The notes under the pieces: generated by a model
What the model was told of the DNA's origin: nothing
Seen by the model: only the letters and a program-made list of their open reading frames with translations
Database searches by the model: none
Origin: Basidiobolus meristosporus CBS 931.73
Taxonomy: Eukaryota > Fungi > Basidiobolomycota
Direction of reading: 5' to 3'
Assembly: GCA_002104905.1 (NCBI GenBank)
Contig: MCFE01000695.1
Location: forward strand, 1-44,413
DNA length: 44,413 nt
Translations under genes and position numbers: made by a program
Part shown: piece after piece, positions 8,781-44,413 of the stretch
How positions within the stretch are numbered: the stretch's first letter is position 1
Layout of the letters: the number at the start of each line of letters is the position of its first letter

Positions 8781-8930
8781 ATACAGTTTTCTTCATTTGT
8801 TTAACTCAGTTCAAAGCATCACTACTCCTGTGTTATTTGGGAGGCACTTCGAACCCATCCAAACCTACTGCAGATTGGCAGTGAGCGCTTGTCCTTGAGT
8901 TCTTGATGCTTTTTGTGGCCATCTATGTCG

Positions 8931-20333: not shown

Positions 20334-20681
20334 TGTTATAAATTTTGCAATTACACCTAAATATTAACCTAACTTGATTACTTTGATAAAATATCTACTG
20401 ATTTAGAGAATTCTGACCCAATTCTTTGATGGGACTTACTCAGAATATTCTTGCCAAAGTATCAGGCACTCGGATTGTACTACATGTTGAAGTAGTCCAA
20501 ACACCTCCATGCTTTACACAAATGCTTCTGTGACCTTCCTAAGTATATTCCACCTATTTGTATTGCCAAGGCCTTGTCAAAGTAAAAACACTACTTTTAC
20601 AATCAATAAATCATTAAGTGAAAACCACATAATCTGCTTGTCCTCCCAATCCCTGTGATATCTCCCAAAACTCTAACAGCA
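20334..20681 (+). mobile_element. Diverged solo LTR related to the copia LTR at 29195-29543, in the opposite orientation
   Basis: Its reverse complement aligns end to end with the 349-bp copia LTR, sharing GATTATGTGGTTTTCACTTAATGATTTATTGATTGTA and CAAGTTAGGT.AATATTTAGGTG. It has TG...CA ends and is 348 bp. No TSD is visible. Confidence 0.85.
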
Positions 20682-24054: not shown

Positions 24055-25680
24055 AAGCAGTGGGTAGCTTCTTACCAAATTTGGTAAGAAGGTTGTTCAC
24101 CAAGGTTCACTATGTAGATCCTCAAGAGCCACTATTTGCTACACTGGCGGAGGAGTTCATCAAGCTTCCGAAGCAATTCTACGGCGAAAACGTTACTGAC
24201 CACTACATTCTGGATCTTTATAATGAATTGTTACCAGCCTCTTCAGATAAGCAATACTTGAAATCCACCACCAAGGCTGTCGTGCACGCACTCAGAAAGG
24301 CCGACAAGAACGCTGTTTGGGTGATGCAGAGTTGATTCTTGACCAGCACTCAGTTCTGGACTCCGGGTGTTACCAAGTCGTTCTTGGATGGGATCTGGGA
24401 GACTGAGGGCAAGGCGTTTGTCATCGATCTTTATTCTGAGGAATTGCTGCAGTGGAAGTATACAGATGGTTACTACGGCATGGATTGGGGATGGAGCATG
24501 TAAGTTATCGGTCGATGGGTGATTTCGGGTCCACTAATGAAAGTCTCCTAGGATCGACAATTTTGCTGGCGGACAAGGAATCTTCGGGGTTCCTCCCACC
24601 GTGTTGGCTGAGCCATTTGCTGGGTACCATCATTCCGCAAAGAGCATGAGGGGAATGGGGGTCACGCCTGACGGGACTAACACCAATGAATTCCTGTACC
24701 ACATAGTAACTGATATCGCTTGGAAGGATCCTAATCAGCCTTTGAGCGGTAAACCATTGGTAGACCAGTTCATCCAGCGGCGCCACGGTCCCAAACAAAC
24801 TACCCCGTTGATGTTGGAGGCCTGGGACCAGATCTCCAAGTCCTTGTGGAACATCACTGGAGAGCCTGACCGGTAAAGCTAAATCATATCTGGACCTCAG
24901 CCCGAAGTTAGATATGGTGGCATATGGATCGAGACCAAGAGGGAGGAAGCGCTCATACCGCTGTTCAGCAGGGGCTGGATGAACTTGCTCAAGAGGACTC
25001 GTTGCTAGAGCTGACTCTAGGATCGAAAGCCAATAATGCATCAACCGGGCTCCGCTTCGATATAATTGACGTGACTCAAGAGGTTTTGTTAAATACAGTA
25101 TTGCCAACATTGCAAAAGGAATTGGTCAAAGGATTTAACCAGACTGATGTGCCTCGGATTACCCTCTATGGCAGTCTAATAGAGGCATTGATACTAGATA
25201 CCAACAGGTTGCTCTCAACGCACACTCAGTCCCACCCTGGTAAATGGTTGGGCTACGCAAAGGCCACGGCCAAGAACATGAAGGTGACTGCCGGTGAGCA
25301 ATTCATCACTCAACAAGTTACTTGGAATTCCAGGCGTGTAACCAAATCACTTGGTGGGGTCCAGCTTCTCATGGAGCCTTAGCCAACTATGCTCCCAAAC
25401 ACTGGGCTGGGCTTGTCAAGACATGCCATCTTCCTAGATGGCAGCATTTCTCAAAGTCCTTGCTACAGGTTGCTCGTGCAATGGCAAGGCCTATGACCAA
25501 GATAGGTTCAATGCCGAGGTTGCTGCATTAGAGAGCAAATGGCAGTATGGTACATGGGGGCGAAACAAAGGGGAGACATGGGACCCTTTACCGCAGGATG
25601 ATATGGTTGTGGTAGCACAGGGAATTTTTGGTAGATGGGGTAAACTGGCTACCAATATTTCCCAAAATAAATCTGCCTAA
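24055..25680 (+). pseudogene. Alpha-N-acetylglucosaminidase (GH89/NAGLU) remnant lacking the N-terminus
   Basis: VDPQEPLF, HYILDLYNE..P, AVWVMQS*F (TGA at a conserved W), VIDLYSE, NFAGGQG, GMGVTPDG..TNEFLY, FDIIDVTQEVL, QITWWGP, NYAPKHWAGLV. Also several frameshifts. Confidence 0.8.
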
Positions 25681-25731
25681 AGCATTTTGTCAATAAAACC
25701 TGGAATACTCCATTATTAGTCATAAAAATGT

Positions 25732-25740
25732 GGGTTAGGG
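25732..25740 (+). repeat. GGGTTAGGG telomere-like target/TSD copy 1
   Basis: Directly abuts the 3' end of LINE element A. Confidence 0.85.
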
Positions 25741-26755
25741 GAGGGAAAGTCACCAAGTTGGTGAAATCTTTATTTGAGTCAAGAGCTAATCTAAGTACAA
25801 ATAAAGAAGTCAATTAAGAGGTCTCGAACCTCTCTAGTAAGTAATCTAACTTATGTTTTGTTTCATTTCTAATGTTTGTTTCAATGAAGTAAAGTTCATC
25901 AGGGGTAAATATAAGATTCAAGGGTTTTGGGGGAAGTACACATTGTAGATGTTTCTGATCAATAATATCCAAGACTGGAACCCAGCCTGGGATTAGGTGT
26001 AGTAGGAAAGGTGTGTGGACTTGTAAGTAGCTCTGCCACATAGATCTTAGATGGCCCTGCACCAGTAGTCTTGGTTTCTCAGCTTTTTGAAGTTTTGAAG
26101 CAAGCTCTGTTACTACAGCAGAGCCAACCAGGGTGTGACAGCAAGAAGATCTCAGAGAGGAGTTAGATTCAAGCCATTGTTTGATGGAGGGGTTATGTGA
26201 TTTCTGATGTTTGACTAGGTAGGAAGCATGAAAATAGACCATTTGGGTTATGTATGGGTAGAACCCAAAGGCTCCATTAGTTGCATGGATATAGGGAGAT
26301 ACTGGAAGATAAGGTACCAAGGATCTGATACACTGATGGAGAAATTTATCCAGGTGGTGATGTTCTCTGGAGGTTAGGGGTATAATGTGGAGACCAAATT
26401 CAAGTACTGGCAGTACATACTGCTTTAGAAGTATAGGGATCTTTTGAATTGGAGTTTCTGGAGTGACTACTACTAGAAGCTTTTTAAGGGCCTGTTGGGC
26501 AAGACAGATCCTATTATTCAGGTGGAGCATTGAGTCAATCCCATGTTGACAAAATGGCAGACCTAGATATATGGCTGTTTGTTGTGGCAGAATGCTAGTG
26601 TTCTGTATAGTTGTAGTGCACCCAATTGTGACTGTCTTGGAAATTGAGAGTGAGAGGTTGTTGGCAGCCTAGTACTTATCAATGATGGCAGTGTCTGTTA
26701 TGGGATTAGGAGTAGCAATCTTGATAACATCCACATAGAGAGTTAGTAGTAGATA
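25741..26755 (-). mobile_element. LINE element A: older 5'-truncated relative of the APE-RT LINE (RT C-terminal part + 3' UTR)
   Basis: Frame reads LTLYVDVIKI...IYLGLPF...HLNNRICLAQQAL...KQYVLPVLEFGL, homologous to the ORF2 C-terminus of the other copies. One in-frame stop near 26670. It has the shared 3' terminal signal. Confidence 0.88.
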
Positions 26756-26764
26756 GGGTTAGGG
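26756..26764 (+). repeat. GGGTTAGGG telomere-like target/TSD copy 2
   Basis: Lies exactly between the truncated 5' end of element A and the 3' end of LINE copy 1. Confidence 0.85.
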
Positions 26765-26822
26765 GGGGAGACAGTCATCAACAGGTGAAATCTTTATTTC
26801 AGCGGAAACAAAGAAGCCAGCA

Positions 26823-29189
26823 CTACTGTTGTAGCTTTGATACAAGAGTGTGTAGCTGAGGGGAATTTGTAGGTAAGTTAATAAGAAGTGATGATAGTTC
26901 TTCAGTGCTCAAGACACTGTTCAGTGGGAAGGGGGGTAGCAAGAGAGGTAAGAATGACTTGTGAACAACATTAATGAGGGGAATATGATAAGGATTGATA
27001 TTCATCATAAAGGGAGTGTGCTGCTGCAGATATTGCTGCCAAAGGTTGGTCAAGTACTTCAGGTAGGCCAGCTTGGGTTTTTCTGACTGCAGAATGTAGT
27101 GAGCAAACTTCTTGACTTCAGGATCTCCAAGTATAGTTCTCCAGCAGGAGCCAGGTGTAGTGCGGTGTGTTCTCTTCCAGGCCTTAATCAGTGGGTTGTT
27201 GCAGTGGTGAAGTCTGAGATATAATCTGGTTCTAAGGTAGAGAAGTCTGATCTTATAGGGCATAAACCCAAAAGCACCAAGAATAGCATGTCTGTAGGGG
27301 CATTCAGGCAAATGAGGCACCAAGGAGGTAATGCACCATACTGCAAACTTGTCAAGCTTAGTGCAGTCTCTAGAAGTAAGAGAGAGAAGTGGTAAGCCAT
27401 ATTCCAGGACAGGGAAGACAAACTGCTTGAGTAGAAGGAGGCAGCTGGGAGCTGAAGTTGTAGGAGGAGTAACAGCCAGTAGCTTGTGGAGTGCCTGTCT
27501 TGCCAGGATAATTCTCTTCTTCAGGTGTGCTCCAGAGTCTAGTCCAGTAGGAAGGAAAGGAAAGCCAAGATATGTAGCAGAAACCTGAGCAGGTAGAGTG
27601 GAGTTCTCCAAGTTGATGGGAGAGCCCAAAGGTGCTGTCTTTGCAATGGAAAGCTGGAGATTATTCTTCTGCAGATACTGGTGGATGGTCTGGGAGTCTT
27701 GTTGCACATTGGAGGAGGATATTCTGATGTCATCAGCAAAGAGAGTAACCAGGCAGTCAGCTGACAGTCTTGGGAAATCATTCAGGAGGATGGCAAACAG
27801 TATAGGACCAAGCACAGAGCCTTGAACCACTCCATTAGGAACTGAGAACACAGCTGATTGCTCACTTGGGTGCAGAATTCTTGCTTGTGGATCCAGAAAC
27901 AGAGACCTGACAAGGAGGGTGAGAGAGGTACTGGAGAAGCATTGCAACTTGGACCAAAGCAGATTTCTGTCAACTGAATCAAAGGCCGTGGTAATATTAA
28001 ACAGAACAGAGGGATACTTGCACTGGAGAGAGTGATCTTGGCTAAGTATGACTGCATATTCCAAGGAGAGGCCAGGAACAAAACCAAACTGTGCAGGATG
28101 AAACTTGAGGGAGTCAGAGTAGAGCTCCTGAGCAAGCAGAAGCTCAAACACCTTTCTGCAGGTGGGCAGCAGAGATATTGGCCTGTAGGAGCTAGGATCC
28201 AGGTGCTTTCCTTTACCCTTGTACAGTGGCAGAACATTTGCAAAAGACCATTCCTCAGGAGTAAAAAGCTGGGCTGAGCATTGCTGAAACAGTGGAAGCA
28301 GAAGTGCAGACATGGCCTTGGTACTAGTCTTCAGAAGCTCATAGGAGATTGTGTCCACACCTGGAGCAGTAGAGTTGGGAAGCCTCTTGAGCACATTATG
28401 GATTCTCCCTTGATCAAGTGCAAGTGGGATGGGCAGAGTCTTGAAGCCAGGATGAAAGCCAGGAGTTGAGTACTGCTTTGTAGAGAAGAAGACGTTAGCC
28501 AGCTGTTCTGTTGAAGGTAACTTCCTGGAAGAGGGCCTCATTGCCCTGTAGAGTCTTGATACTGTTCTTGTTATAGAGTTGGAAGATTGCAGAGGCAAAG
28601 AACTCATAATATGATCCCAGAGCTGAGTATGCAGAGTGTGGTGAATTGCCTTGGAGTGGTGTATTGCTGTCAGGAGGAGTTTCTCTGTTTTTGGGTTAGG
28701 GAAACTCAGGTAGCTTTGTTGCAGGGCTGAAACAATGGATTCCCATTTTCTTGAGGTAACAGCAGTAGTCTTGCATGGCAGTGAGAGGGAGGCAGACACC
28801 AGAATCAGATGCTTCACAAAGAGCCAGGCATAGTTGAGATCATCTGGCAGAGAAAGTAGCAAACTGGCAAGCTTCAAGTAGTTCCCAAAGTCTTTCTTCT
28901 GATTCTTGGTAGCTTTGTGGGTGAGCACAGTAAGTTTTGGCAGCTTCTTCTTCACAACTGGTTGCATAGAAAGGGACCAGGCTGGGTGGTCAGAGGCTCA
29001 CAAGGATCCTAGCTCAGCTCCAGAGAATTGCTTAACTTCATTCACAAAGTAGAGGGCAGCAGCAGAAGGACAGATCCAGTCAACACATCTTTTCTCAGAT
29101 TGAGCACCTAGTGCTAGCAGGTGGCTTTCTCTCAGGAAGTTCAGTAGGAATGTAGACCTTGGCTTCATTCTTGCAGTCAGAGTAGTCTA
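26823..29189 (-). pseudogene. ORF2 of LINE copy 1, downstream part (end of APE + reverse transcriptase), open frame
   Basis: VDWI, SDH, APGVDTISYELL, YRPISLL, QFGF, AFDSVDR, GVVQGSVLGPILF, LFADD. The N-terminal APE part lies at 33882-34283. Confidence 0.93.
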
Positions 29190-29194
29190 GTTCT

Positions 29195-29543
29195 TGTTGT
29201 AAGAGTCTTGGAGATATTGGAAGTGATTGGGAGAACAAGTAGATTATGTGGTTTTCACTTAATGATTTATTGATTGTAGAAGTAGTATTTATACTTTTAC
29301 CTAGTCTTGGCATAACAAACACGTAGAATAGGTTAAGGAAGGTCCCAAGAACATGTGTGCAAAGTTTGGGGCTGTTTGGACAACTTTGAGAATTTTCATG
29401 TTCTGGGTACCTGGTATTTTGGTGAAAATATTCTAAGTAAATCCCAACAAGGAATTTGGTCAGTATTCTCTAGGATTTGAAGGTAATGATCTAAGTGACT
29501 AAGTTAGGTGAATATTTAGGTGGAAATACAAATTTTTACAACA
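29195..29543 (-). repeat. Copia 3' LTR
   Basis: TGTTGTAA...TTACAACA ends, preceded on the - strand by the polypurine tract GAGTGGGAG (29544-29552). Confidence 0.97.
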
Positions 29544-29554
29544 CTCCCACTCAG

Positions 29555-32500
29555 CTAAATGTTCATACTGACTAGTCCTAATTTTGACCTAAGATATTCA
29601 AACTTGTCTCTAGCTAATGGTTTGGTAAATATGTCTGCAATCATTTCATCTGTAGGACAGTAAACTAAGCTAACTAAGTTATTCTCTATAGCTTCACGTA
29701 TGAAATGATGTCTAATATCTATGTGCTTGGTTCTAGCATGAAAAGTTGGATTTCTACCTAATTGTATACATCCTTGATTATCTTGAAATAAAGTAATAGG
29801 CGTTTTTTGACATAGGCCTAAATCTGTAAAGAGCTTTCTTAACCACATTGCTTCTTTTGTAGCTTCACAGGCTGCCATATACTCTGCCTCTGTAGTAGAA
29901 AGTGCTACGGTTGGTTGCTTTCTTGAATCCATGAAATTGCTCCTTTACAGTAAAGAAAGGTGTATCCTGTGGTGGATCTTCTGTCTTCTAAATTTCGTCC
30001 CCAAGCAGCATCAGAGTATCCCACAAGATCCTGTTCTGAATCCTTATAAGTGTATCTTAAGCAGATATCAGCAGTTCCTTTTAGGTATCTAAAAATCCGC
30101 TTAACTGCTGCAATATGATCAGATCCATAATTCTGATTATGTTGGCTGACAACTCCCACTGAATATGAGATATCTGGACGTGTTCCAAGCATGATATACA
30201 TCAGACTGCCGACCATAGATTGATAAGGAAAGTCAGGGCTTTCAGATGGCACCAAGCTCTCTTGATTTGGTTGAGTTTTGACCAAGTTAAGGTTTGTCTC
30301 CATTGGGGTAGCTGCCGGTTTACAGTCTTCCATTTTGTACTTCTTTAGTATATCTTGAATATACTTGGATTGGCTTAGGGTAATAGTCTGGGTACTTCTG
30401 TCTATGGAGAACTTAATCCCTAAGTAGTAACTGAGTTCTCCTAGATTGGACATCTTGAACTCCTTAGATAGGCTGGATTTAGTCTCTTCCAATGTTTCTA
30501 GGTTATTGGCGGCTATAATAAGATCATCCACATATAGAGCTAATAGAACTGGATTTGCTCTATCTGGCTTATAGTATATACTATAGTCAGCATTACTCCT
30601 TTTGAAACTCAAAGATTCCAAATAAGAATCTATCTTGCAATTCCAGGCTCTTGGTGATTGTTTGAGACCATATAGTGACTTTTTAAGCTTGCAGACCAAA
30701 TGGGGGTTATCTTGGTCAACAAACCCATCAGGCTGGTCCATATACACGTCCTCATCAAGTTCTCCATTCAAAAATGCAGTTTTTACATCCATTTGATGAA
30801 TAAAAAACTTATATTTGGCTGCAATAGCCAATATTAATCTGATGGAATTAAACTTGGCTACCGGTGCAAAGGTCTCAGTATAGTGCAAGTCCTTTTGTTT
30901 GAGAGTATCCTTTGGCTACAAGTCTTGCTTTGTATCTTTCAATTGTACCATCAGCCTTGTACTTTTGTCTTGAAGACCCATCTGCATCCAATTGATTTTC
31001 GGTTGATTGGTAATTTGACTAAGTCCCAAGTTTGATTTTCCATCAGGGCCTGATATTCCTCAGTCATTGCAGATCTCCAAAACTTTGTCTGAGGGCTATT
31101 TAGGGCCTCTTTTACAGTCTGGGGTTCATCAATATGGACTGAATAGGCATAGGCTAAGTTTGTACCCTCATTGATATAGTAATTTGGGCTATTTCTTGTC
31201 CGAATTGGATCTCCGGGCATTTGATACTGGAATGATCACTTCTGGGATATTCCTGGGCACTGATTCTGGCTGAACCACGGTTGTAGAGTCCTCTGGAGTG
31301 AAAAAATTTTCATTGTTTTGCTCTGATTCAATCCTGACAATTGGTGGACTTGAGATCAAATTTTCGTCATCATCTGATGTCATTTTTTGTGAAAATTTTG
31401 AATTTTCATCAAACAACACATCCCTGGACTTGATCAGCTTCTTTGCTTTGGTATTGTAGAGTCTGTATGCCTTACTCTCATTGCAGTAGCCCAAAAATAT
31501 GCATTTTACACTTTTTGGCTCAAATTTTGACTGATTTCCGGCCAGTTTTTTGGCATATGCTGTACACCCAAATATTCTTAGATGTTCTGCACTTGGTCTG
31601 TATCCATACCATGCTTCAAATGGAGTAGAATCACAAAGTATTCTGTTATAACTCCTATTTTTAAGATATACAGCAGTGGCAACTGATTCCGCCCAAAAAT
31701 CATAGGATAATTTTTGATCATGGATCATAGATCTTGCCATATCAATTATTGATCTGTTAGCTTGTTCTGCTACTCCATTTTGCTGTGGGGAGTATGGTAC
31801 AGTAGTCTCTTGCTTTATCCCATGAATTTTGCAGAAGTGGATGAAGAGTTTTGAGGTATATTCTCCACCATTGTCAGAGCGTATTTTCTTGATTTTTTCA
31901 CCAGTTTCTCTCTCCACCATGGCTTTAAACTCCCTGAACTTAGACAGAGCTTCTTCCTTTCTCTCCATGAAGTAGACCCATGTGTATCTTGTATAATCAT
32001 CAATAAAAGTGATTAAATACTTCATCCCGCCTAAGGATAAATTTTGCATAGGTCCACACAGATCTGAGTGAATTAGATCTAATTTTTTCTTAGTTTTGAT
32101 TAACCCAGAGCTCTTGAACGGTTGTCTGGCTTGTTTCCCATATATGCAGGCTTCACAGTGCTCCAAATTAGCTGGGGGATCAATTTTCACTCCAGAAATT
32201 AGCTGATCTTTGATCATTTTACGCAAATAATCAAAATTGATGTGTCCAAATCTCCTGTGCCAAAGCATTGGTGTTTCTTCATTTAAGTTACTTATATTGG
32301 CTTCCAGATATGATGGAATATAAGTCAACTTGTATAGATTCTGATCTCTGATGCCCAAAGCAATATGAGCACCATTTTGATCAGTGATCCTGCATCCAGA
32401 ATTGTCAAAACTGAAACTGAGTCCTTCTGCTGTGGCCTTGCTTACAGAGAGTAGGTTCTTGGCTATTTCTGGTACATAGAGTACTTCTTTAAAGGTCAGT

Positions 32501-33528
32501 GTATGGCTTCCTTCACTGCTTCTAAGGTTTACTTGGATAGTTCCTTCTCCCACTGCATCAAGTGTTCTATTGTCACCCATGAAAACCTTCTTAATTGGAA
32601 TTTCTTGATATTGGGTAAAAAGTTCTTTTTGGTGTGTAAAGTGTTGAGAAGCTCCAGAGTCAATATACCACGTCTGAGAATCCTTGTTTGTGGTCATATT
32701 TAGTGCAGATATGAATAGTCTATCTTCAGTTGTTGCAGCATTTCCATATTCAGGCTTCTTTTGCTGATAATCTCTCTTTTTGAGACACCGGTCTGATGTG
32801 TGTCCTTTCCTTTTGCAGTAGTTGCAAAATAGGTTGCTGTTGCCTTTGTAGGGTCTTGGGTACCTCCTTTGTTGGTTATCATTGCTTATTAAAGCATTTT
32901 CTTCTTCCTTCTTATTGGCGCTTGATTTTCTTAATTCTTCATCCAGGAGCCTTCCATATACGTAATTTAAGGTCAAATCTTCAGTTCTGGACTCTAGGGC
33001 TGATACAAGGCCCTGAAACTCGTCTGTCAGGCTATTCAGGATGGTAACTATCACATCCTCATCAGTAGTTGGTACGCCCACAGATTCCATCTCATCTACC
33101 AGCAGGGTAATTCTGTTAATTAGATTTTTCATTTCTTCTCCTGGCAGCATCTTTGTAGTAAAGAATTTTCTTCTCAGATACATTTTCTTGGCAGCTGAAC
33201 ATGACTGGTAGGTGTCTTCTAATGCCTTCCAGGCATTCTTTGCCGTTTTTGCTCTTGAGCATTGAATTAGCAATTTGTCCTTGACATTAAGGCAAATGCA
33301 GTTAAAGGCACTTTGTTCTTTCTTCTGGTACTTCAAGGCTTCCTCTCCCACGTTTTTAGGAGGGCATTCTTCTCCCATGACAATATCCCAAAGGCCTCTT
33401 TCTTGTAGCAGCATCTTCATCTTCACCTTCCACACTTGGTAGTTAGATCCATCCAACTTTTCAGCAGAGGGAAAAATTCCAGTAATAGCAGTAGTAGACA
33501 TTGCAGAGAGTGACAGCTTGGGGCTCAT
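29555..33528 (-). pseudogene. Copia gag-pol polyprotein with four single-base frameshifts
   Basis: KLDGSNYQVWK (gag), CNYCKRKGHTSDRC (zinc knuckle), WYIDSGASQH (protease), LWHRRFGH, HSDLCGP/SDNGGEY/QQNGVAE (integrase), QMDVKTAFLNG/LYVDDL (RT), SDAAW/TEAEY/ADIFTK (RNase H). Shifts near 31205, 30965, 30885 and 29930. Confidence 0.95.
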
Positions 33529-33532
33529 AACC
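33521..33532 (-). other. Primer-binding site GGTTATGAGCCC (initiator tRNA-Met anticodon-arm type)
   Basis: Immediately follows the CA end of the 5' LTR. Complementary to GGGCUCAUAACC of tRNAiMet, as in Ty5 and Drosophila copia. Confidence 0.88.
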
Positions 33533-33881
33533 TGTTGTAAGAGTCTTGGAGATATTGGAAGTGATTGGGAGAACAAGTAGATTATGTGGTTTTCACTTAA
33601 TGATTTATTGATTGTAGAAGTAGTATTTATACTTTTACCTAGTCTTGGCATAACAAACACGTAAAATAGGTTAAGGAAGGTCCCAAGAACATGTGTGCAA
33701 AGTTTGGGGCTGTTTGGACAACTTTGAGAATTTTCATGTTCTGGGTACCTGGTATTTTGGTGAAAATATTCTAAGTAAATCCCGACAAGGAATTTGGTCA
33801 GTATTCTCTAGGATTTGAAGGTAATGATCTAAGTGACTAAGTTAGGTGAATATTTAGGTGGAAATACAAATTTTTACAACA
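33533..33881 (-). repeat. Copia 5' LTR
   Basis: 349 bp, differing from the other LTR at two positions (33664 and 33784). Confidence 0.97.
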
Positions 33882-34393
33882 GTTCTCAGGATGGGGAATG
33901 TTGAGATCTCCAAGCAAGATAACAGGTGTTGATATAGATTGTTGGTATTGCTGAACCTTCTGGCATATAACTTGCACTTCCTGAAGGGCAAGACTTGGAG
34001 GCAGATAGCAGAGCACCAGACTGATAGTTGGCAACTGGAGAGCAGCACAGTAAGGGGAGTAAAGAGGAACACAGAGCTGAGGAGTATTGATGGTAGAAGA
34101 GATGAAGCAGATAGAGGAGGTATTCTTTGTTCTAGGAGTAGAAAAGCAATATAGATTAGTCAAAAGTATAGAGGGTAGCTGGACATCAATCAAGCACAGG
34201 AGGGAAAATCTTGAAAGAAGTCTCTCTAGAGTTGGTCTTGATGGCTGTATGCTGTTGCTGTTAAGCAACAGAACTTCAGGTAGTCAGACAGAGGTTGTAG
34301 CTTCTTCAGAGGCAGCATTGATAATGTGACCTGCAGAGTCCCAGAGCTCTTCAAATGGTGCATCACCTAAGTCAGCAAGGAGGGAAATGGCAT

Positions 34394-34402
34394 GGGTTAG
34401 GG
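34394..34402 (+). repeat. GGGTTAGGG telomere-like target/TSD copy 3
   Basis: At the truncated 5' junction of LINE copy 1, with 2-nt GG microhomology. Confidence 0.85.
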
Positions 34403-34440
34403 TGTAGGTGTTATAGTAAGGGCTAGGAAAAGGTTAGAAG

Positions 34441-34512
34441 AGCAGGGGGTCTGGGGGATGCAGTCTCCTAGAGAATAAAAAAGCAGGGGGTTTGGGGGAT
34501 GCAATCCCCCAT
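34441..34512. repeat. Two direct copies of a GC-rich hairpin motif
   Basis: AGCAGGGGGTCTGGGGGATGCAGTCTCCTAG and AGCAGGGGGTTTGGGGGATGCAATCCCCCAT, 41 bp apart. The second contains TGGGGGAT-GCA-ATCCCCCA. Confidence 0.8.
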
Positions 34513-35042
34513 ACTGCTCCCAAACTCTTTAAATTCACTTTGGATTACTTTTCTCTCATTCTTGGTTCTGGTCCCTTAGGGTTACAAATCCTCCTCCTAA
34601 CCCTTATCACCCTAACCATAAATATTTTTACCCTACAATTGGCACATTGTGTGCCCATATAGTGGGCATGTCTGGGCCAATATTTGTCTCCCTATACTGT
34701 CTATATGCTCCGTATAATTCTTGATGAACATTTAATTGATAAACTGTTACTTTTAATGTATAACTAATAATTAATGGGAATCATCCCAAACTGGCCACAA
34801 TCCCATATTTTGATAAGCTTTGGGCACCATAAATTGCGCGTCCCTAATATGATAAAAAATTCATGGCCAATACAAATTTTCTGTAACCCAATTGCTTTTA
34901 CCCAATATAAAGTGTATCCCAAAGTTCAATATTTATTATGGCTATAATAGAAACTTTATTTGACACCATTGCAACTACTACTTGTGTTCTATGCGCACAT
35001 GTATCCTGCAGGAATTGTCAAACTTAACCACATGGTACAAAA

Positions 35043-35500
35043 GTGCTTTTATTGTTCATCATGATAGTTTTACATGAGTTCCTAATGCACTTTGAAAGTA
35101 CGCAGTAGCCATACCCCAACAGGTTTTAGGATGTCCACTTGCTTTGTCTACTTGTGTCTAGCGGGAGCTATCAATCATCAGCCACGCAATACTGAAATGC
35201 TTTTATTTTTCATCATGCTAGTTTTGTATGAATTCCTAATACACTTTCATAGTGCGCAGTAACCATACCCCAACAGGTTTTAAGGATACCCACTTGCTAC
35301 GTTTACTTGTGTCTAGCAGGAGTCAATAATCATCAGCTGCGTGGTAATAAAGTGCTTTTATTTTTCATCACAATAGTTTTGCATGAGTCCCTGACGCACT
35401 TTTATAGTGCGCAGTAACCATACCCCCAGAAAGTAGTGTAGATGCTTACTTTAAACGCTCACTTGTGTATTGTACGGACTATCAACAAACAGCCGTGTGG
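35043..35500. repeat. Tandem repeat, about 3 units of 154-155 bp
   Basis: Units start TGCTTTTATT at 35044, 35198 and 35353 and share GCAGTA(G/A)CCATACCCC and ACTTGTGT. Confidence 0.9.
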
Positions 35501-35622
35501 GAATGGAACATCATAGAAAAGCATTGCTTTATTGTTAGCAAGTATTGATGCGCAAATAGTGGTACTATGTGAATTATTGAGTAACTATTTACTCTAGTTG
35601 GTTCCAAGATATTCCTAGACAA

Positions 35623-36357
35623 TAGACTTGTTCCTTTGGATAGTGCCACATTGAGCCATGAGTGCCAAATGATGCCATAGTGTGCCAGGGAGGCCAAATA
35701 AACATATACTTGGCCACAAAGTGTGAAACATATATCTGAATCTTCATGCAAATCAGCCCCTCTGTATCACCCATAGTGTTGGAGAAAATCCATTTTTTGA
35801 CCTTTTTTTTTAGGTAAATGTTGTGCGGGATGTGTAAGTGCACAAAAGGATTGAAGACATGCATCAGGTACTCAATACCCATGGCACTCTGAATCTAGCT
35901 CCTGTGGCTTGTAACATGTCACAAAAATGCATGGCACTATCTTGGTCCACTGGTACTATCTGGCACTATATTTAATTATTAGCCCTAAAGTAAGATCTAT
36001 ACAAAGCACTTATAGTGCTAGATAATACCAGTGGACTAAGATAGTGCCATGCATTTTTGTGACATGTTACAAGCCACAGGAGTTAGATTCAGAGTGCCAT
36101 GGGTATTAAGTACCTGATGCATGTCTTCAGTTCTTCTGTGCTCTTACACATCCTGCACAGCATTGACTTAAAAAAAAGGTCAAAAAATGGATTTTCTCCT
36201 GCATCATAGGTGAAACACAGGGGCTGCTTTGCATGAAGATGCATACCTATGTTTCACACTCTGTGGCCTAGTACAGGTTCATTTGGCCTTCCTGGCACAC
36301 TACATTATCATTTGGCACTCATGGCTCAATGTGGCACTATCCAACGGAACAAGTCTA
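35623..36357. repeat. Long inverted repeat (foldback): arms 35623-35970 and 36011-36357, 40-bp spacer
   Basis: The arms are reverse complements along their whole length, for example GTAACATGTCACAAAAATGCATGGCACTATCTT versus AAGATAGTGCCATGCATTTTTGTGACATGTTAC. Confidence 0.95.
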
Positions 36358-36620
36358 ATATGCTCAAAATCAGTATTAGCATCAATAGCTTGCTCTTTGA
36401 TCACTAAACCACCGCACCCAATATGAGGTGGCCTTGATTTGTCTAGCCGTCAAGGAATGAAACCAGAGTACAGTCACAAGCAAGGCAAAAGTGAAATGTG
36501 ATGAAGTAAGTGTATATGAAAGTAATATAAATCTACAGGACAGAAGAGAACAACTAGTAGTTAAGCAGCACTCACTGATACTCCACCAAGTAGAGCACCA
36601 ACACGGACAATAAACAAGCC

Positions 36621-37082
36621 ATGAGGGGAAAGCTTAAGGACCGCTAATCAGGGATCAAGACCAAAAGAGGAAGCTGCCTCTACCATAGCAGTCCTTGTGC
36701 TCCAAAGGAAGACCAAGAGTCTACTATAGACAAAGATTGCGGCAGGAAGATCAGTACAATTACCAGTTCTGGTAGTGGTACCTTTGGAAGTCCCAAATAC
36801 CCGGAGAAAACCTCAAAAAAATTGGCAGATGACTCAGTTGTCCTGAGGAGAAAATAAACCAATGCAATTGAGCAGTTTGGAGACAAACTTCAGCTTAGTT
36901 CTTCTTTGCCTCACTATAAAGTACTCCAAGTGGCTTATTTGGATTTTAAGCGTATGAAGGAGAATCAGGCAGAGACTGATAAATTAAGTGATAGTCAATT
37001 GCATCACTTCTTAGATCAGGTAGAGAAACAGTTGCACAGCCAAGAGATGGAACAAGAATTGACAGTTACAGAAGCTAAATAA
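36621..37082 (+). pseudogene. Decayed ORF of unknown origin (154 codons, two internal TAA)
   Basis: Single frame from ATG to TAA with only two internal stops and a helical, charged C-terminal half. No family recognised. Confidence 0.3.
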
Positions 37083-38290
37083 TTTTGCCAATGTAGTTTT
37101 GCATTTTAATAAAATATAAGGGTGCTAACAAGAACAGAATAAAGTTAACTTATGTGTACATCAAATGATTCAAATACTGGCTAGATGGATGTTACGTAGG
37201 AGCAAGAAGCTCAGTAACCTCAAAGGACAGATATGATGAATGGGCCACCTACATCATCCAAATGAGTATAAAAGTGGAGAAAGTAGACATAATCCTTCAT
37301 AAACAACAAGAAGCATGGAAGCAGGCAGTAGCTGGGTAGATGCCAGGAGTGAAGGTAGAGTACAAAGAGAGCAAGGAAGGGGACAAGGATGTGGAAGAGG
37401 ATGTGGAACTGGGCGCGGAAGGGGAAGAGGGCAAGGAAGTGGCCAAATCCAAGAGGAGCATGAAGGAGGTGTTGCAGAAACGTGAATGATGCAGAGCAAG
37501 TTGCTGTAGTCACTGCCAGGCGGCGGGTCAACCAAGTTTCCCAAGCATTGTCAGAGGTCTGACAAGAACTTCTGGAATATAGGACAACATTGCACCATGA
37601 GATATTGCGATGTATGTGCCAGGAGATTAAACAGAGGAGGGGTGATATTGTAAAGCTAAATCAGGATATTGCTGGACTTCAAGCCCAGATTGATTTCAGT
37701 TTCCACCATTCTACTGAGGCATTAGTGGCACAAATGGTGGAAAAGTTTGCCTGCATCAGGGCAAGCAATGAGCAGGGTGCATCTTCCAACCCAGGTGTAC
37801 TTGTGAGCAACAGTATTGGAGGGGATACTACTTCCTCCCTTGAACCTACCATAAGCCAAGAGACAAGAGCAGAATCCTCCACAACAATGAGAATGGCCCC
37901 CATGCAGGGTGATATGGAAGTGTGCAAAGAAGACATGGAGAAGCAGAGTGGGGATACTATATGCCAACCAGAAACTGTAATGGAGGCGGAGAGACCAAGT
38001 CATATTGTCATCTTAAAAATACCACAGGTTGATTCATTGCTATCACTTCCCCCATCATCACTATCTGTGCCCCCATCACCACTGCCATCCTCTGGCTAAC
38101 TTGAGTAAATAAAGAATTTCCACCATCCCAAATCAATGAATTGACAAGTAATAAGTTGAACTGATAAGATTAACAATTTGCAGACTAATATATGTAAAGT
38201 ATGTAGTACTTAAAAGCTTTCAAGTTGTGGTGTATTATCAAGTATTCACCATCACATAAATCATGCAGTAGTTGTTGTATCCCTATCCCA

Positions 38291-39345
38291 ATGGCATTGG
38301 AAGCCGGCAGTTACAAGGAGCATTGGAAAAGTTTTGGTGTTTACCTGGCAACAGTGGCAGGTGTAACAAAACGCAGCTATTGCTTGATGACCATTACCCT
38401 GTCTATGAGATACTTGCTATTATATGGAGGGTATTCTGTTGAGCACTTTCAAGACAGCAAAATATCCCCGCCTTATGATGAGCGTAGAGCTAAAGAAACA
38501 TCTGGCTGTGGAATACTCTATGAACCCAGCTCAAAGGTTCAAATGATTCACCTTGCAGATTTACATGGTGATGAAGACATCACAGTGACAGTTCTCCCAG
38601 CTCCATACAACATATCAACTACAGAGGCAGCCAAAGGGGTGATTTTAATTGGCAACAGCTGTGCTAGTGACCACAAGAATCTCTACATATATGGTATTTT
38701 GAGCTCAGCCGTAGAGAATACTCAGGGCAACATAAAAGTGCCAAAAAACGGGGGGAAAAAGCAATACAAAGCAAGAGTGGGGAGACAATCAGTAGAAGAC
38801 TGAGCAAGCTGGAGGTAATCACATACAAAGATGGCAATGGATGCTCCAGAGTATTGGAGACAAGGCCATTCTTGAATAATCCGGCAAATGTGCCTTCAGC
38901 AAGAGGTTGGGCAGTTCTTACGTACCCATTTGATTGCTTATTCTTGCTGGGCAGCTATCCTACACCATTGGAACCACCTTATACTCAACCAAATGGGAGT
39001 CTTTTAAACAAGTTCTACTGTTTGAAATTGCAAACTGGTGATTGGGAAAGACAATATGTACACTTAGCAATACAGGAGCTTGGAGAAAACTTTATTGCTG
39101 TGGTAAACAAGTATGGCAACCAAATCCAATACATCAACAATGCAAATGTTACATTCACCTATGATGTCAATAATCAGATCTGGATTTACCCTCCCAATCT
39201 AAGTCAGGAAGAAATGAGTACAAAGCAGCTACTAGGGCACATTCTTAATGAAGTGGCAGCAATCTCTCAGCGGCACAAGAGGGAAGGCAAAGGAAGTGCT
39301 GAGACTGAAAATATCTTGAAGCATAGTGCCCATGGTCTTACTTAG
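38291..39345 (+). CDS. Kelch-like repeat protein, split by one frameshift; ends at the LINE target site
   Basis: RYLLLYGGY, KNLYIYG, VPSARGWAVLT..LFLLG and LLNKFYCLKLQTGDWE resemble Kelch blades. The frame change falls at or near the A6-C-G6-A5 run at about 38743-38760. Confidence 0.5.
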
Positions 39346-39347
39346 GG

Positions 39348-40132
39348 GAGGGAAAGTCACCAAGGTAGGTGAAATCTTTATTTGACTTTAGACAAGTCTA
39401 ACTACAAATAAAGAAGCCAGTTGGGAATAGAATATTCCCAAAGTAAACACTAAGTTGAATATGAATAAATCTAAGCTAAAGTTAAGGCAGTATCCCAGAG
39501 TACACTGGAGTTCAGGTTCATGGGGGAGTGGAGTAGATAAGCTTGAGAGATATGATAATCTTTGAGGAAGTGGGTAACAGCAGGTGAAGGGGAGTTTTTG
39601 ATAAGTGAAGTGAATCTTGAGAGCAGAGATTCCTCTAAGGAGAAGGTCTTGTAAACTGGAGAATCAGGAAACTCTTTGAAGGCATGGTCAGTAGGCTCCC
39701 AGTAAAGCTGGTCAGAGACATTTTGAGAGAACTCTTTAGCAATACTTTTGTCAAGTACTACCTCCAGAGTGTGATGGTTGATAAATCTCATGTTAACAAT
39801 CTTGGATAAGTTGTAACCTTGTTGCTTGAGATACATCCTATGCTCAGATATAGGAATAAACTCCACATTGGCAAAGTAGCAGACAGCCCAGTCAGTAGCA
39901 GGAGGCAAATTGGAAGTGGCAGGAAACTTTCTTTTAGTCTTGGGAGGAGCAGCAGGATGTCTTGAGGAAGCAGGAACAGACTTTTTGACAACTTCAGAGT
40001 AAGAAGAATGAGCAGGAGCAGATGATTCTTGGGGAGTCTTGTTGGCAGGAAGAGTTGGCTCAGGGACAATAGATTCTTGCAGATCAGAGAAGGCAGAAAA
40101 GAGCTTTTGAACTTGTTTCTTGAGTAGGGCAT
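39348..40132 (-). mobile_element. Element B: 5'-truncated ORF1-only LINE derivative with the family 3' end, flanked by TTAGGG (39342-39347 and 40133-40138)
   Basis: Open frame 40132-39471 is homologous to the ORF1 C-terminal half (NLPPATDWAVCYF..PIS..R..L....LSKIVN). It is followed directly by a ~125-nt 3' UTR ending like element A, with no ORF2. Confidence 0.85.
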
Positions 40133-40194
40133 TTAGGGGGAGACAGTCACCAACAGGTGAAATCTTTATTTCAGTTGAAACAAAGAAGCCAGTG

Positions 40195-42961
40195 CTACTG
40201 TTGTAGCTTTGATACAAGAGTGTGTAGCTGAGGGGAATTTGTAGGTAAGTTAATAAGAAGTGATGATAGTTCTTCAGTGCTCAAGACACTGTTCAGTGGG
40301 AAGGGGGGTAGCAAGAGAGGTAAGAATGACTTGTGAACAACATTAATGAGGGGAATGTGATAAGGATTGATATTCATCATAAAGGAAGTGTGCTGCTGCA
40401 GATATTGCTGCCAAAGGTCTGTCAAGTACTTCAGGTAGGCCAGCTTGGGTTTTCTGACTGCAGAATATAGTGAGCAAACTTCTTGACTTCAGGATCTCCA
40501 AGTATAGTTCTCCGGCAGGAGCCAGGTGTTGTGTGGTGTGTTCTCTTCCAGGCCTTAATCAGTGGGTTGTTGCAGTTGTGAAGTCTGAGGTATAATCTGG
40601 TTCTAAGGTAGAGAAGTCTGATCTTATAGGGCATAAACCCAAAAGCACCAAGAATAGCATGTCTGTAGGGGCATTCAGGCAAATGAGGCACCAGGGAGGT
40701 AATGCACCATACTGCAAACTTGTCAAGCTTAGTGCAGTCTCTAGAAGTAAGAGAGAGAAGTGGTAAGCCAAATTCCAGGACAGGGAAGACAAACTGCTTG
40801 AGTAGAAGAAGGCAGCTGGGAGCTGAAGTTGTAGGAGGAGTAACAGCCAGTAGCTTGTGGAGTGCTTGTCTTGCAAGGATAATTCTCTTCTTCAGGTGTG
40901 CTCCAGAGTCTAGTCCAGTAGGAAGGAAAGGAAAGCCAAGATATGTAGCAGAAACCTGAGCAGGTAGAGTGGAGTTCTCTAAGTTGATGGGAGAGCCCAA
41001 AGGTACTGTCTTTGCAATGGAAAGCTGGAGATTATTCTTCTGCAGATACTGGTGGATGGCCTGGGAGTCTTGTTGCACATTGGAGGAGGATATTCTGATG
41101 TCATCAGCAAAGAGAGTAACCAGGCAGTCAGCTGAGAGTCTTGGGAAATCATTCAGGAAGATGGCAAACAGTATAGGACCAGCACAGAGCCTTGAACCAC
41201 TCCATTAGGAACTGAGAACACAGCTGATTGCTCACTTGGGTGCAGAATTCTTGCTTGTGGATCCAGAAACAGAGACCTGACAAGGAGGGTGAGAGAGGTA
41301 CTGGAGAAGCATTGCAACTTAGACCAAAGCAGATTTCTGTCAACAGAATCAAAGGCCTTAGTAATATCAAACAGAACAGAGGGATACTTGCACTGGAGAG
41401 AGTGATCTTGGCTAAGTATGACTGCATATTCCAAGGAGAGGCCAGGAACAAAGCCAAACTGTGCAGGATGAAACTTGAGGGAGTCAGAGTAGAGCTCCTG
41501 AGCAAGCAGAAGCTCAAACACCTTTCTGCAGGTGGGCAGCAGAGATATTGGCCTGTAGGAGCTAGGATCCAGGTGCTTTCCTTTACCCTTGTACAGTGGC
41601 AGAACATTTGCAAAGGACCATTCCTCAGGAGTAGAAAGCTGGGCTGAGCATTGCTGAAACAGTGGAAGCAGAAGTGCAGACATGGCCTTGGTACTAGTCT
41701 TCAGAAGCTCATAAGAGATTGTGTCCACACCTGGAGCAGTAGAGTTGGGAAGCCTCTTGAGCACATTATGGATTCTCCTTTGATCAAGTGCAAGTGGGAT
41801 GGGCAGAGTCTTGAAGTCAGGATGAAAGCCAGGAGTTGAGTACTGCTTTGTAGAGAAGAAGATGTTAGCCAGCTGTTCTGTTGAAGGTAACTTCCTGGAA
41901 GAGGGCCTCATTGCCCTGTAGAGTCTTGATACTGTTCTTGTTATAGAGTTGGAAGATTGCAGAGGCAAGGAACTCATAATATGATCCCAGAGCTGAGTAT
42001 GCAGAGTGTGGTGAATTGCCTTGGAGTGGTGTATTGCTGTCAGGAGGAGTTTCTCTGTTTTTGGGTTAGGGAAACTCAGGTAGCTTTGTTGCAGGGCTGA
42101 AACAATGGATTCCCATTTTCTTGAGGTAACAGCAGTAGTCTTGCATGGCAGTGAGAGGGAGGCAGACACCAGAATCAGATGCTTCACAAAGAGCCAGGCA
42201 TAGTTGAGATCATCTGGCAGAGAAAGTAGCAAACTGGCAAGCTTCAAGTAGTTCCCAAAGTCTTTCTTCTGATTCTTGGTAGCTTTGTGGGTGAGCACAG
42301 TAAGTTTTGGCAGCTTCTTCTTCACAACTGGTTGCATAGAAAGGGACCAGGCTGGGTGGTCAGAGGCTCTCAAGGATCCTAGCTCAGCTCCAGAGAATTG
42401 CTTAACTTCATTCACAAAGTAGAGGGCAGCAGCAGAAGGGCAGATCCAGTCAACACATCTTTTCTCAGATTGAGCACCTAGTGCTAGCAGATGGCTTTCT
42501 CTCAGGAAGTTCAGTAGGAATGTAGACCTTGGCTTCATTCTTGCAGTCAGAGTAGTCTTGTTCTCAGGATGGGGAATGTTGAGATCTCCAAGCAAGATAA
42601 TAGGTGTTGATATAGATTGCTGGTATTGCTGAACTTTCTGGCATATAACTTGCACTTCCTGAAGGGCAAGACTTGGAGGCAGATAGCAGAGCACCAGACT
42701 GATAGTTGGCAACTGGAGAGCAGCACAGTAAGGGGAGTAAAGAGGAACACAGAGCTGAGGAGTATTGATGGTAGAAGAGATGAAGCAGATAGAGGAGGTA
42801 TTCTTTGTTCTAGGAGTAGAAAAGCAATATAGATTAGTCAAAAGTATAGAGGGTAGCTGGACATCAATCAAACACAGGAGGGAAAATCTTGAAAGAAGTC
42901 TCTCTAGAGTTGGTCTTGATGGCTGTATGCTGTTGCAGTTAAGCAACAGAACTTCAGGTAG
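40195..42961 (-). CDS. LINE ORF2: AP-like endonuclease + reverse transcriptase, about 920 codons, two 1-bp deletions relative to copy 1
   Basis: LLLNCNSI, CYLPP, LLGDLN, VDWI and SDH (APE), plus the RT motifs FDITKAFDSVDR, GVVQGSVL and LFADD. Deletions near 41180 and 40450. No RNase H seen. Confidence 0.93.
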
Positions 42962-44278
42962 TCAGGCAGAGGTTGTAGCTTCTTCAGAGGCAGCATTGAC
43001 AATGTGACCTGCAGAGTCCCAGAGCTCTTCAAATGGTGCATCACTTAAGTCAGCAAGGAGGGAAATGGCATGGTTCTTGAGGAAGTATGCCACATCATAG
43101 GAGGGGGCTTGTCTCTTGATGGCAGCAAAGAAAGACAGAATGGCAACATGGGCTGGAGGCTTGTTGAACAGTAGAGAGTCAGAGGATTCAGATTCTTCAG
43201 GCACTATCTTGAAGTCAGTTTTCAGCCAGTTAAGGTTCTTCTCCACAAAGGCAACAAATGGGTCAGCAATGTTTTGGTCTAGGATAACCTCCAGAATCTT
43301 CCCTTTTCTCCAGGCCAGGTTGACAATTCTTGAGAGCTGAATATTGCATGCCTTGAGTGCTTTCCTGATGTTGGAAATGGGAGTCCAGGGAACTTGCTTC
43401 AAGTACACCACAGTCCAGGTAGAAGCTGGTGGTAGGTTTGCTGGGGGCTTGTAAGTCCTTCTGTGTGGCAATGGAGCTGCAGTAGTCAGATTGGAGTCCA
43501 CATTCTCAGTAGAGGGTTTTCTTGATGTGTCTTGCTGAATGGTACTGGAGCTGGATGTGCTGATAATTCTTGCTAGAACCTTGCCTGCATAAGTCTGAGG
43601 TATAGCTGAGGTGACTGTAGAGGTGGTGGCAGCTGGTGCAGGTGGAGAGGCAGAAACTGAAGCAGGAACTGAGGTCACCTGGGAGAAGGCAGTAGAAGCA
43701 GGTTTTCTGGGAGGAACAGAGTTCACTATCCAGTTGTTCTGTAAAACACTGGAGTAGCTTTTCTGTGGAACAGGATCTTGCTCTTGAACAGGAACAGAAG
43801 CAGGAGGCTGGGGCTGAGCAGTAGTGGTAAGGCAGTGGCACTCCAAGGAAGCTTTTTGCAAGGCATCTCTGGCAGTTTTCAGGGCAGTATTGGCTTCATT
43901 CTTGAGCTTCTTGCATTGGGCATCCAGTCTCTTGTTTTCAATAGCCAGGGCAGTATTGGCAGCCTCTAAATCAGCAATTCTCTTCTCAATTGCAAGGAAT
44001 CTCTGAAGAAATGCATCAGTAGAAGTGCTGGCATCTGGGAGAGCAGTGGCAGGAATAGAGTCCATTGACAGTGGGCTTCTTGGAGGCAAGGAAAGTGGAC
44101 TGGCAGATTCAGGCACAAAAGGAGATATCCTGGCAGGAGGAGAAGGAGTATCCAAGGCAGTAACAGAGGCAATTCTTGTTGGTGAAGCAGCAGCAGGGGA
44201 GGCAAGCCTGTTCAGAAACTGGGCAGGAGAGAGTGCTTGAGGAGAGGGAGTCTTCAGCTTGCCAAGCATGTCTTCCAT
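42962..44278 (-). CDS. LINE ORF1 (gag-like): S/P-rich N-terminus, coiled coil, conserved C-terminal domain, no CCHC knuckle seen
   Basis: 438-aa open frame directly upstream of ORF2. Heptad region LAIEKRIADLEAANTALAIENKRLDAQCKKLK. The C-terminal domain is shared with element B. Confidence 0.9.
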   Translation of the reverse strand: MEDMLGKLKTPSPQALSPAQFLNRLASPAAASPTRIASVTALDTPSPPARISPFVPESASPLSLPPRSPLSMDSIPATALPDASTSTDAFLQRFLAIEKRIADLEAANTALAIENKRLDAQCKKLKNEANTALKTARDALQKASLECHCLTTTAQPQPPASVPVQEQDPVPQKSYSSVLQNNWIVNSVPPRKPASTAFSQVTSVPASVSASPPAPAATTSTVTSAIPQTYAGKVLARIISTSSSSTIQQDTSRKPSTENVDSNLTTAAPLPHRRTYKPPANLPPASTWTVVYLKQVPWTPISNIRKALKACNIQLSRIVNLAWRKGKILEVILDQNIADPFVAFVEKNLNWLKTDFKIVPEESESSDSLLFNKPPAHVAILSFFAAIKRQAPSYDVAYFLKNHAISLLADLSDAPFEELWDSAGHIVNAASEEATTSA

Positions 44279-44413
44279 CAGAGTGATACCAATATTCCTG
44301 GTGCATTTGCAGAGAAAAGTAAGCTTCCTGAGTCTGCCAGCTCTTCCATTCCTTCTGATAGTTCCTTTGTTTCCACAGTTGGGGCAAGAAATCTTCTTGA
44401 CAGACTTGTCAAA

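Follow-up and report, generated by a model that had tools for sequence, protein, structure and literature searches.

Retrotransposons specialised for telomeres have been described in insects, a lizard, Giardia, Chlorella, and rotifers and, among the fungi, in a few ascomycetes and basidiomycetes. TRAS1 and SART1, which are R1-clade long interspersed nuclear elements (LINEs), are specific for the telomeric repeats of Bombyx and other insects, and the fungal LINE cases described so far all use, to our knowledge, a restriction-like endonuclease. In this study, we analyzed a stretch of 44,413 nt from the fungus Basidiobolus meristosporus CBS 931.73 (contig MCFE01000695.1; hereafter, the window). 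An earlier note on this DNA had described, at positions 25732-40138, a LINE family with an apurinic/apyrimidinic endonuclease (APE) that is joined to the telomere motif TTAGGG and stacked head-to-tail. We consider it likely that the window is a subtelomere with a telomere-targeted LINE consortium building terminal arrays, which comprises two autonomous families with APE and reverse transcriptase (RT) and a partner containing only the first open reading frame (ORF1).

The described systems differ in their endonucleases and in how they are joined to the telomere. TRAS and SART have poly(A) tails and sit inside long (TTAGG)n stretches (PMC5537684, PMC7265360). In the Drosophila elements HeT-A, TART, and TAHRE, a conserved APE is found alongside apparent addition to chromosome ends (PMC5537684). 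PMC5537684, citing Gladyshev and Arkhipova 2007, describes Athena and Coprina as 5'-truncated elements in a terminal head-to-tail arrangement with short runs of telomeric repeats at their 3' ends, which suggests that the RNA 3' end pairs with the G-overhang when a chromosome end is uncapped. MoTeR of Magnaporthe, FoTeR of Fusarium, and Cnl1 of Cryptococcus are members of the CRE/SLACS clade that encode a restriction-like endonuclease at the C-terminus and occur in or beside (TTAGGG)n telomeres, often near telomere-linked helicase genes (PMC12857005); the earlier note had likewise ascribed this type of endonuclease to MoTeR and Cnl1. In addition, the literature lists Tx1-1_ACar of the anole lizard as a LINE of telomeric repeats of the TTAGGG type, and Zepp of Chlorella as LINE-like and accumulated at telomeric regions (PMC10088271, PMC5537684).

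Junctions of the elements with telomeric repeats

Four elements without long terminal repeats (LTRs), namely A, copy 1, B, and copy 2, were found in the window, all on the minus strand with their 3' ends at low coordinates. Copies 1 and 2 represent the main family, hereafter the c-type. On the plus strand, each antisense 3' end directly follows TTAGGG (25735-25740, 26759-26764, 39342-39347, and 40133-40138; 4/4), exactly where the earlier note had placed these junctions. Across the whole window, TTAGGG was matched 19 times against 21.65 expected; thus, the motif is not enriched overall, and its occurrence at all four element ends is positional rather than compositional.

The earlier note had called for a wider census of the flanks. 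We examined 36 family 3' ends, taken from the window, from five further loci of B. meristosporus (L010, L011, L017, L018, and L019 of the assembly GCA_002104905.1; L017, L018, and L019 are chromosome-end paralogs of the window), and from independent ENA and Logan contigs. Thirty-two of these ends continue in phase into TAA(CCC(TAA...)), for which the chance is approximately 1/64. The tract following the C-run was 3 nt long at 12 junctions, 5-8 nt at 10, 9-11 nt at seven, 15 nt at one, and 19 nt at one. Tracts between elements accordingly measure 0.5-3 units and never more than about three, and the live telomeres hold 23-35 units. The sequence on the proximal side can be anything; it often ends with G, GG, GGG, GGGT, TT, or TTA in the register of the repeat, and at some junctions it has no homology to the repeat at all.

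Genome-wide junction data were obtained as consensus flanks of Logan contigs from the organism's own runs. Left of position 40136, at the 3' end of copy 2, the contigs diverged in 52 and 48 cases with the consensus ...TTAGGGTTAG. Furthermore, at approximately 46 joints the contigs went back or skipped to a 3' end, with TAG, TAGGG, AGGTTAG, or CTTAGGGTTAG in between, which corresponds to head-to-tail stacks. These joints, together with the single orientation in the window (4/4 on the minus strand), bear out the arrangement that the earlier note had proposed.

The sense strand of the elements is the C-strand, and the C-run with the following TAA reads CCCTAA. All family members share the 3'-end architecture AAATAAAGATT(T/A)CACC, loop, GGTG, C-run, and TAA, and this conserved terminus is common to the c-, A-, and B-type copies and to the ENA and Logan relatives. 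No poly(A) tract was found at the 3' end of any copy in the census of 36 ends. The RNA 3' end may be set by the AAUAAA that precedes the C-run/TAA boundary by approximately 28 nt. The putative stem of CACC and GGTG was invariant or simply broken among the variants, and no compensatory changes were observed; therefore, we make no structural claim on a stem-loop.

The closest proteins and all the long loci were from B. meristosporus CBS 931.73 itself, and other samples contributed ENA and Logan contigs with protein relatives at 44-79% identity. The relatives on contigs L001-L009 and L012 point to a wide occurrence of the family within Basidiobolus. Two full-length relatives from other samples with 64% protein identity (L003 1-5665 and L004 1-5075) are likewise stacked head-to-tail, and a single CCCTAA(CCC) unit separates the 3' end from the 5' untranslated region of the next element (TGCATCCATCCATCC...). 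Hence, the stacking habit is older than the split of these families. A scan of metagenomes for the 3' terminal motif yielded four matches, all of which were due to chance, and three of them were on ciliate-like contigs. The contigs L014-L016 are such chance matches unrelated to the LINEs; L014 ends in GGGGTTTT (G4T4) repeats, that is, a ciliate-type telomere of a short gene-sized molecule.

Position at chromosome ends and composition of the array

Two of the paralogous loci run into real telomeres. L018 ends with ...AACATGGG(TTAGGG)~23 and L019 with (TTAGGG)35; both repeats directly cap the arrays, and the cap sits on a 5'-truncated LINE or another element. The G-strand is the strand bearing the antisense LINEs in L018 and L019, and consequently the LINE 5' ends face the chromosome tip. 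Mapping of the copies relative to chromosome ends, which the earlier note had proposed, gave the same picture for every locus: L010, L011, L017, L018, and L019 all lie at contig ends with the LINE 5' ends toward the end (5/5). In L019, further short non-coding elements lie between telomere units (15114-15878 and 18981-19752), one of which starts with TTGCGCGCTGTGACTGC on the G-strand.

The last recognizable host gene before the array of the window is NAGLU, which lies 350 bp before the first junction. L018 has a NAGLU paralog at 91-94% identity (window 24098-25735 versus L018 163-1908), and its presence beside another telomere indicates that subtelomeric gene blocks have been duplicated between chromosome ends. 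Moreover, the order of NAGLU, element A, the subtelomeric repeat T-R, and c-type LINE in L018 is the same as that in the window, at 91-95% identity; therefore, the window is a paralogous subtelomere. The subtelomeres of Basidiobolus are accordingly recombining, paralogous mosaics.

The c-type LINE consists of an upstream ORF1 and an ORF2 with an N-terminal endonuclease and an RT domain. The RT was recognized as Pfam RVT_1 (E 1e-22), and its nearest solved relative in a sequence search of the PDB, which holds few LINE RTs, was human L1 ORF2p (E 4e-12). The endonuclease reached only 21.5 bits with Pfam Exo_endo_phos_2, which is under the cut-off, and sequence and profile searches of this region against the PDB gave only marginal matches to ExoIII motifs. 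Hence, we used fold comparison. A structure predicted by AlphaFold (pLDDT, the model's local confidence score, 62.8) matched APE1 (E 4e-7), the TRAS1 endonuclease (1wdu, E 9e-7), and the L1 endonuclease with a probability of 1.0. In addition, the endonuclease motifs N..., GDLN, RCVDWI, and SDH were invariant among relatives of 43-76% identity. A restriction-like endonuclease, whose motif CCHC...RHD...E...R/KPD is defined in PMC12857005, was found neither in the Pfam scan nor as a motif in the C-terminal 300 aa of ORF2. Judging from the domains and the predicted fold, the c-type is a LINE with APE and RT, and the designation as an APE-type LINE in the earlier note was correct.

The c-type copies range from 79 to 4414 nt, and all have the 3' end in common with variable 5' truncation. 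ORF1 of copy 2 is located at 42962-44278+ and ORF2 starts at 42946. The full-length copy of 4414 nt was found in L019 (10688-15101) and is 99.3% identical to copy 2; it carries frameshifts, and homopolymer indels typical of long-read error occur in the same contig. Beyond its 5' end lie TTAGGGTTAGGG and then another element. Thus, the telomere sequence that the earlier note had predicted beyond the 5' end of copy 2 is present in this sister copy.

Element A contains a 238-aa ORF with 42% identity to the C-terminal part of the c-type ORF2 (E 2e-46), and longer copies of its family are present in L010 (13298-15146) and L011 (2156-6179; about 4 kb with a 700-aa ORF). Consequently, A is regarded as a truncated copy of a second autonomous family. 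The ORF of element B showed 36% identity to the C-terminal half of the c-type ORF1 (E 3e-23) and is directly followed by the 3' untranslated region; the 76-nt 3' ends of B and A are 88% identical. On these comparisons, the window reads as two autonomous families (copies 1 and 2; A) with the ORF1-only partner B, a copia-type retrotransposon, and a helicase-linked subtelomeric repeat. The features are summarized in Table 1.

Table 1 Features of the terminal array in the window (strand given as plus, minus, or a dot for none).
Feature	Position	Strand	Remark
NAGLU C-terminal domain exon, last recognizable host gene before the array	24924..25382	+	Pfam NAGLU_C, E 6e-12
Junction of host flank and element A	25732..25740	+	GGGT common to the paralogous flank, then TAGGG
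Element A	25741..26758	-	5'-truncated (~1 kb) copy of a second autonomous LINE family
One TTAGGG unit between truncated 5' end of A and 3' end of copy 1	26759..26764	+	
Copy 1 of c-type LINE, 3' part	26765..29194	-	98.2% identity with copy 2; RT domain around 27558-28196
Copia-type LTR retrotransposon inside copy 1	29195..33881	-	gag, integrase, and RVT_2 domains
Copy 1, 5' part (start of APE region)	33882..34395	-	truncated at ...GGCATGG
(G)TTAGGG unit between truncated 5' end of copy 1 and T-R	34396..34402	+	
T-R, proximal part	34403..35624	.	degenerate telomere-like hexamers at start, 155-bp tandem repeats
MITE-like (miniature inverted-repeat transposable element-like) high-copy inverted-repeat insertion in T-R	35625..36356	.	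paralogs without the insertion
T-R, distal part	36357..39341	.	cut at 39341 relative to paralogs; in L017 followed by an SNF2-type helicase ORF
TTAGGG between truncated T-R and B	39342..39347	+	missing from uninterrupted paralogs
Element B	39348..40132	-	ORF1-only (gag-only) partner with family 3' end
TTAGGG between 5' end of B and 3' end of copy 2	40133..40138	+	
Copy 2 of c-type LINE, nearly full length	40139..44413	-	leaves the window ~126 nt short of the L019 5' end
Conserved 3' terminus	40139..40172	-	AAUAAA-containing AAATAAAGATTTCACC, loop, GGTGA, C-run, then TAA
APE-type endonuclease domain of ORF2	42302..42946	-	invariant motifs and fold match

The copia insertion in copy 1 is young, having 349-bp LTRs of 99.4% identity and a 5-bp target duplication. 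Its gag-integrase ORF (823 aa) and RT ORF (327 aa) are separated, and a diverged solo LTR-like copy (76%) lies at 20334-20682. The 732-bp element inserted in T-R (35625-36356) was found at very high depth and with internal joints between opposite strands, as in a MITE or a foldback-like element, and L017, L018, and L019 are contiguous across its insertion point. At the proximal boundary of T-R, the hexamers TGTAGG TGTTATAG TAAGGG CTAGG were observed. The T-R of L017 (2819-14430) contains an ORF on the plus strand for the C-terminal lobe of an SNF2-type helicase (Helicase_C, E 6e-14; Chd1 and Fft3 as the top matches in the PDB), and a 3.4-kb insertion in this T-R includes an ORF for a DDE_Tnp_4 (Harbinger/PIF-like) transposase at 8112-8996.

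Origin of the telomeric units and of the arrays

In the model that follows from the earlier note, APE would nick any TTAGGG, including a single interstitial one, and each insertion would duplicate the unit and so regenerate the target, whereby the stacks would grow from within. The flanking of A, copy 1, and B by TTAGGG at either end, the single unit at many junctions, and the conservation of the APE domain are what this model would lead one to expect. However, comparison with uninterrupted paralogs gave a different result (a slash marks the breakpoint). The 3' junction of B in the window reads ...CATGGTCTTAC/TTAGGGGAGGG, and its counterpart in L017, L018, and L019 reads ...CATG(G)TCTTAC/TGTCC(C)ACTTAAGAACC (also ...GGTCTTAC/TGTCCCAC; TGTCC(C)ACTTAAG) without TTAGGG. 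Similarly, T-R is cut in L018 at ...GGATGGGT/TAGGGGGAGACAG, and L017 runs on as ...GGATGGGT/GCAAATACC. The site taken by B thus held no TTAGGG in three paralogs, which argues against the duplication of a pre-existing target unit. The earlier note had also held that CCCTAA would be encoded by the element, and not a target, if it were never duplicated at the 5' junction; at the one window junction clean enough for this comparison, no target duplication was found.

The sequence GGGTTAGGG does occur three times, at 25732, 26756, and 34394, as the earlier note had reported, but its interpretation as a duplicated target did not hold, since the leading G residues derive from the proximal sequences. 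At the junction of the host and A, the window reads ...AAATGTGGGT/TAGGGGAGGG and L018 reads ...AAAGTAGGGT/AAACGAG; the assignment of GGGT at 25732 to the host flank is suggestive only, being based on a single paralog at 91% identity. The GGG at 26756 is the sequence of A itself, because longer A copies read GATAGGG/AGAGTC with their own ATAGGG, and the GG at 34394 belongs to copy 1 (CATGG), copy 2 reading GGCATGG/TTCTTG. The third GGGTTAGGG adjoins the T-R repeat and not unique DNA. Furthermore, the tracts flanking one element are unequal (9 versus 3, 15 versus 9, and 3 versus 15), none of the junctions examined showed a duplicated unique flank, and no family copy was seen at the TTAGGG sites in the gene-bearing 25 kb of the window. 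The use of a single interstitial unit is also at variance with the terminal position of the arrays, of which those in L018 and L019 are capped by (TTAGGG)23-35. Taken together, these findings make growth from within by duplication of interstitial motifs improbable.

The T-R repeat provides another view of how the arrays were built. Its left boundary is the same in L010, L011, L017, L018, and L019, each time after a telomere unit and a different truncated LINE, and its distal cut falls at a different point in each of the window, L018, and L019. The T-R sequence continuing beyond the cut of the window begins with TGTCCCACTTAAG...; this missing distal part was absent before the telomere in L018 and L019 and elsewhere within the window. 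Since the missing T-R is not regained before the telomere, the arrays of L018 and L019 were built on truncated ends and not inserted in intact DNA. We considered T-R as a possible retroelement, since its proximal end is fixed and some of its distally truncated fragments measure only 30-55 nt, and as a possible Y'-like repeat spread by recombination, based on the SNF2-helicase ORF in L017 and the degenerate hexamers at the boundary.

Recombination might in turn account for the arrays as a whole, if they arose mostly by break-induced replication or segmental duplication between ends with little ongoing targeted retrotransposition. The subtelomeres are indeed paralogous, with the window and L018 sharing the same order at 91-95% identity, and the fixed T-R boundary of degenerate telomere-like hexamers is a plausible invasion site. 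However, the c-type copies are 98-99% identical to each other, whereas the surrounding paralogous DNA is 91-95% identical, and they are truncated at many points and have different neighbors. These results indicate many recent independent additions and render an origin mostly by recombination highly improbable; recombination is the probable explanation for how T-R spread, but it does not account for the junction rule of the LINEs. We give the least credence of all to CCCTAA being just a simple-repeat tail that the element encodes, comparable to the TAA tail in the I factor, with untargeted nested insertion in a repeat-rich region: although 12 of the 36 junctions show TAA only and the empty site lacks TTAGGG, so that at least one unit comes with the element or is added, the orientation is uniform in 5/5 loci, host elements are not split and no distal halves of interrupted copies were found, the arrays lie under real telomeres, and head-to-tail joints occur genome-wide.

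Under the preferred reading, that of a LINE consortium building terminal arrays, the following sequence of events is proposed. The element RNAs, as far as their ends can be deduced from the DNA copies, would end in a putative hairpin motif, a C-run, and UAA, and CCCUAA is the complement of the telomere G-strand. The 3'-OH of a TTAGGG G-strand would pair with this CCCUAA terminus and prime reverse transcription. The cDNA would then extend the G-strand and, therefore, the 5' end of the element would point to the chromosome tip. The new end, often 5'-truncated at G-rich microhomology, would be recapped with TTAGGG, and the next element would be added one to three units further out, giving rise to one-way head-to-tail arrays. 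Because of the terminal priming that we infer here, the TTAGGG units are interpreted as remnants of the telomere or of primer pairing, and not as target-site duplications of an interstitial motif.

Random nicking by an endonuclease in a tract of 23-35 units would commonly leave 4 to 30 units on the proximal side, but no such tracts were observed (0/36 junctions). This result favors either priming at a critically short end or nicking restricted to the tract base. We would give a little less than an even chance to a 3'-OH provided by a critically short natural end, as in Athena, HeT-A, and endonuclease-independent L1. A nick by APE near the base of the telomere tract, which remains a candidate because the APE domain is conserved, is plausible to us at somewhat below even. 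As a tentative and rather doubtful extension, the elements may take part in a hybrid maintenance of chromosome ends: at one to three remaining units, LINE RNA would be copied onto the exposed end, with or without a trimming nick by APE, and telomerase would recap it. In that case, the LINE consortium with its further passengers would correspond, in a fungus, to the Drosophila telomere at a stage at which telomerase is still present.

Several points weigh against the reading as a terminally built array, or against parts of it. Assemblies break at repeats, and a contig end alone is weak evidence; hence, the argument for terminal location rests on the orientation (5/5) and the two real telomeres. 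The window itself has no telomere, its distal end lies inside copy 2, and its terminal location is taken from the paralogs. The NAGLU flank was compared with a single paralog (91% identity), and that paralog may have an insertion of its own at this site. In the endonuclease, the position of the catalytic Glu is occupied by Asp (CLIDV). The very conservation of the APE sequence argues that nicking matters, and a mechanism of the TRAS/SART type would fit at least as well as end-priming.

Comparison with known telomeric retrotransposons

In full-text searches of the literature on telomeres or retrotransposons of Basidiobolus, we found no description of the present system. Among the fungal elements, MoTeR, FoTeR, and Cnl1 resemble the present family as non-LTR elements at (TTAGGG)n telomeres, but the Basidiobolus elements differ from them in having an N-terminal APE endonuclease. 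Tx1-1_ACar and Zepp are likewise listed as LINE or LINE-like elements of telomeric regions, and their hosts are an animal and a green alga. With Athena and Coprina, as described in PMC5537684, the Basidiobolus elements share 5' truncation, a terminal head-to-tail position, and short telomeric repeats adjoining the 3' end. However, Athena and Coprina are endonuclease-deficient with a Penelope/TERT-like RT, unlike the c-type LINE with its N-terminal APE and an RT nearest to L1 ORF2p.

The arrays resemble those of HeT-A, TART, and TAHRE in that they are one-way and terminal, with 5' ends toward the tip, variable 5' truncation, and gag-only elements beside those with APE and RT. The Drosophila elements, however, belong to an unrelated lineage, have poly(A) tails, and reside at ends without telomerase repeats, whereas TTAGGG lies between the elements and (TTAGGG)23-35 caps are present in Basidiobolus. 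If our reading is true, an APE-type LINE consortium occupies the TTAGGG telomeres of an early-diverging fungus, comprising a gag-only partner, lacking poly(A), and having an RNA terminus complementary to the telomere, and this would represent an independent, convergent origin of the life of retrotransposons at chromosome ends. The short tracts between elements beside telomeres of 23-35 units would also allow the need for an endonuclease to be tested against that for deprotected ends in a culturable fungus.

TRAS1 and SART1 share with the Basidiobolus families the combination of APE and RT in LINEs located at telomerase-type repeats of chromosome ends, in a host that retains its telomeric repeats. 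In both cases, the 3' end is joined to the host telomeric repeat in a fixed orientation (32/36 here, with TTAGGG as the host telomere), the sense strand, as seen in the c-type, is the C-rich strand, and the predicted fold of the c-type endonuclease matches that of TRAS1. The Basidiobolus elements are nevertheless distinguished from TRAS and SART by the absence of poly(A), the tracts of 0.5-3 units, the fungal host, and the ORF1-only partner.

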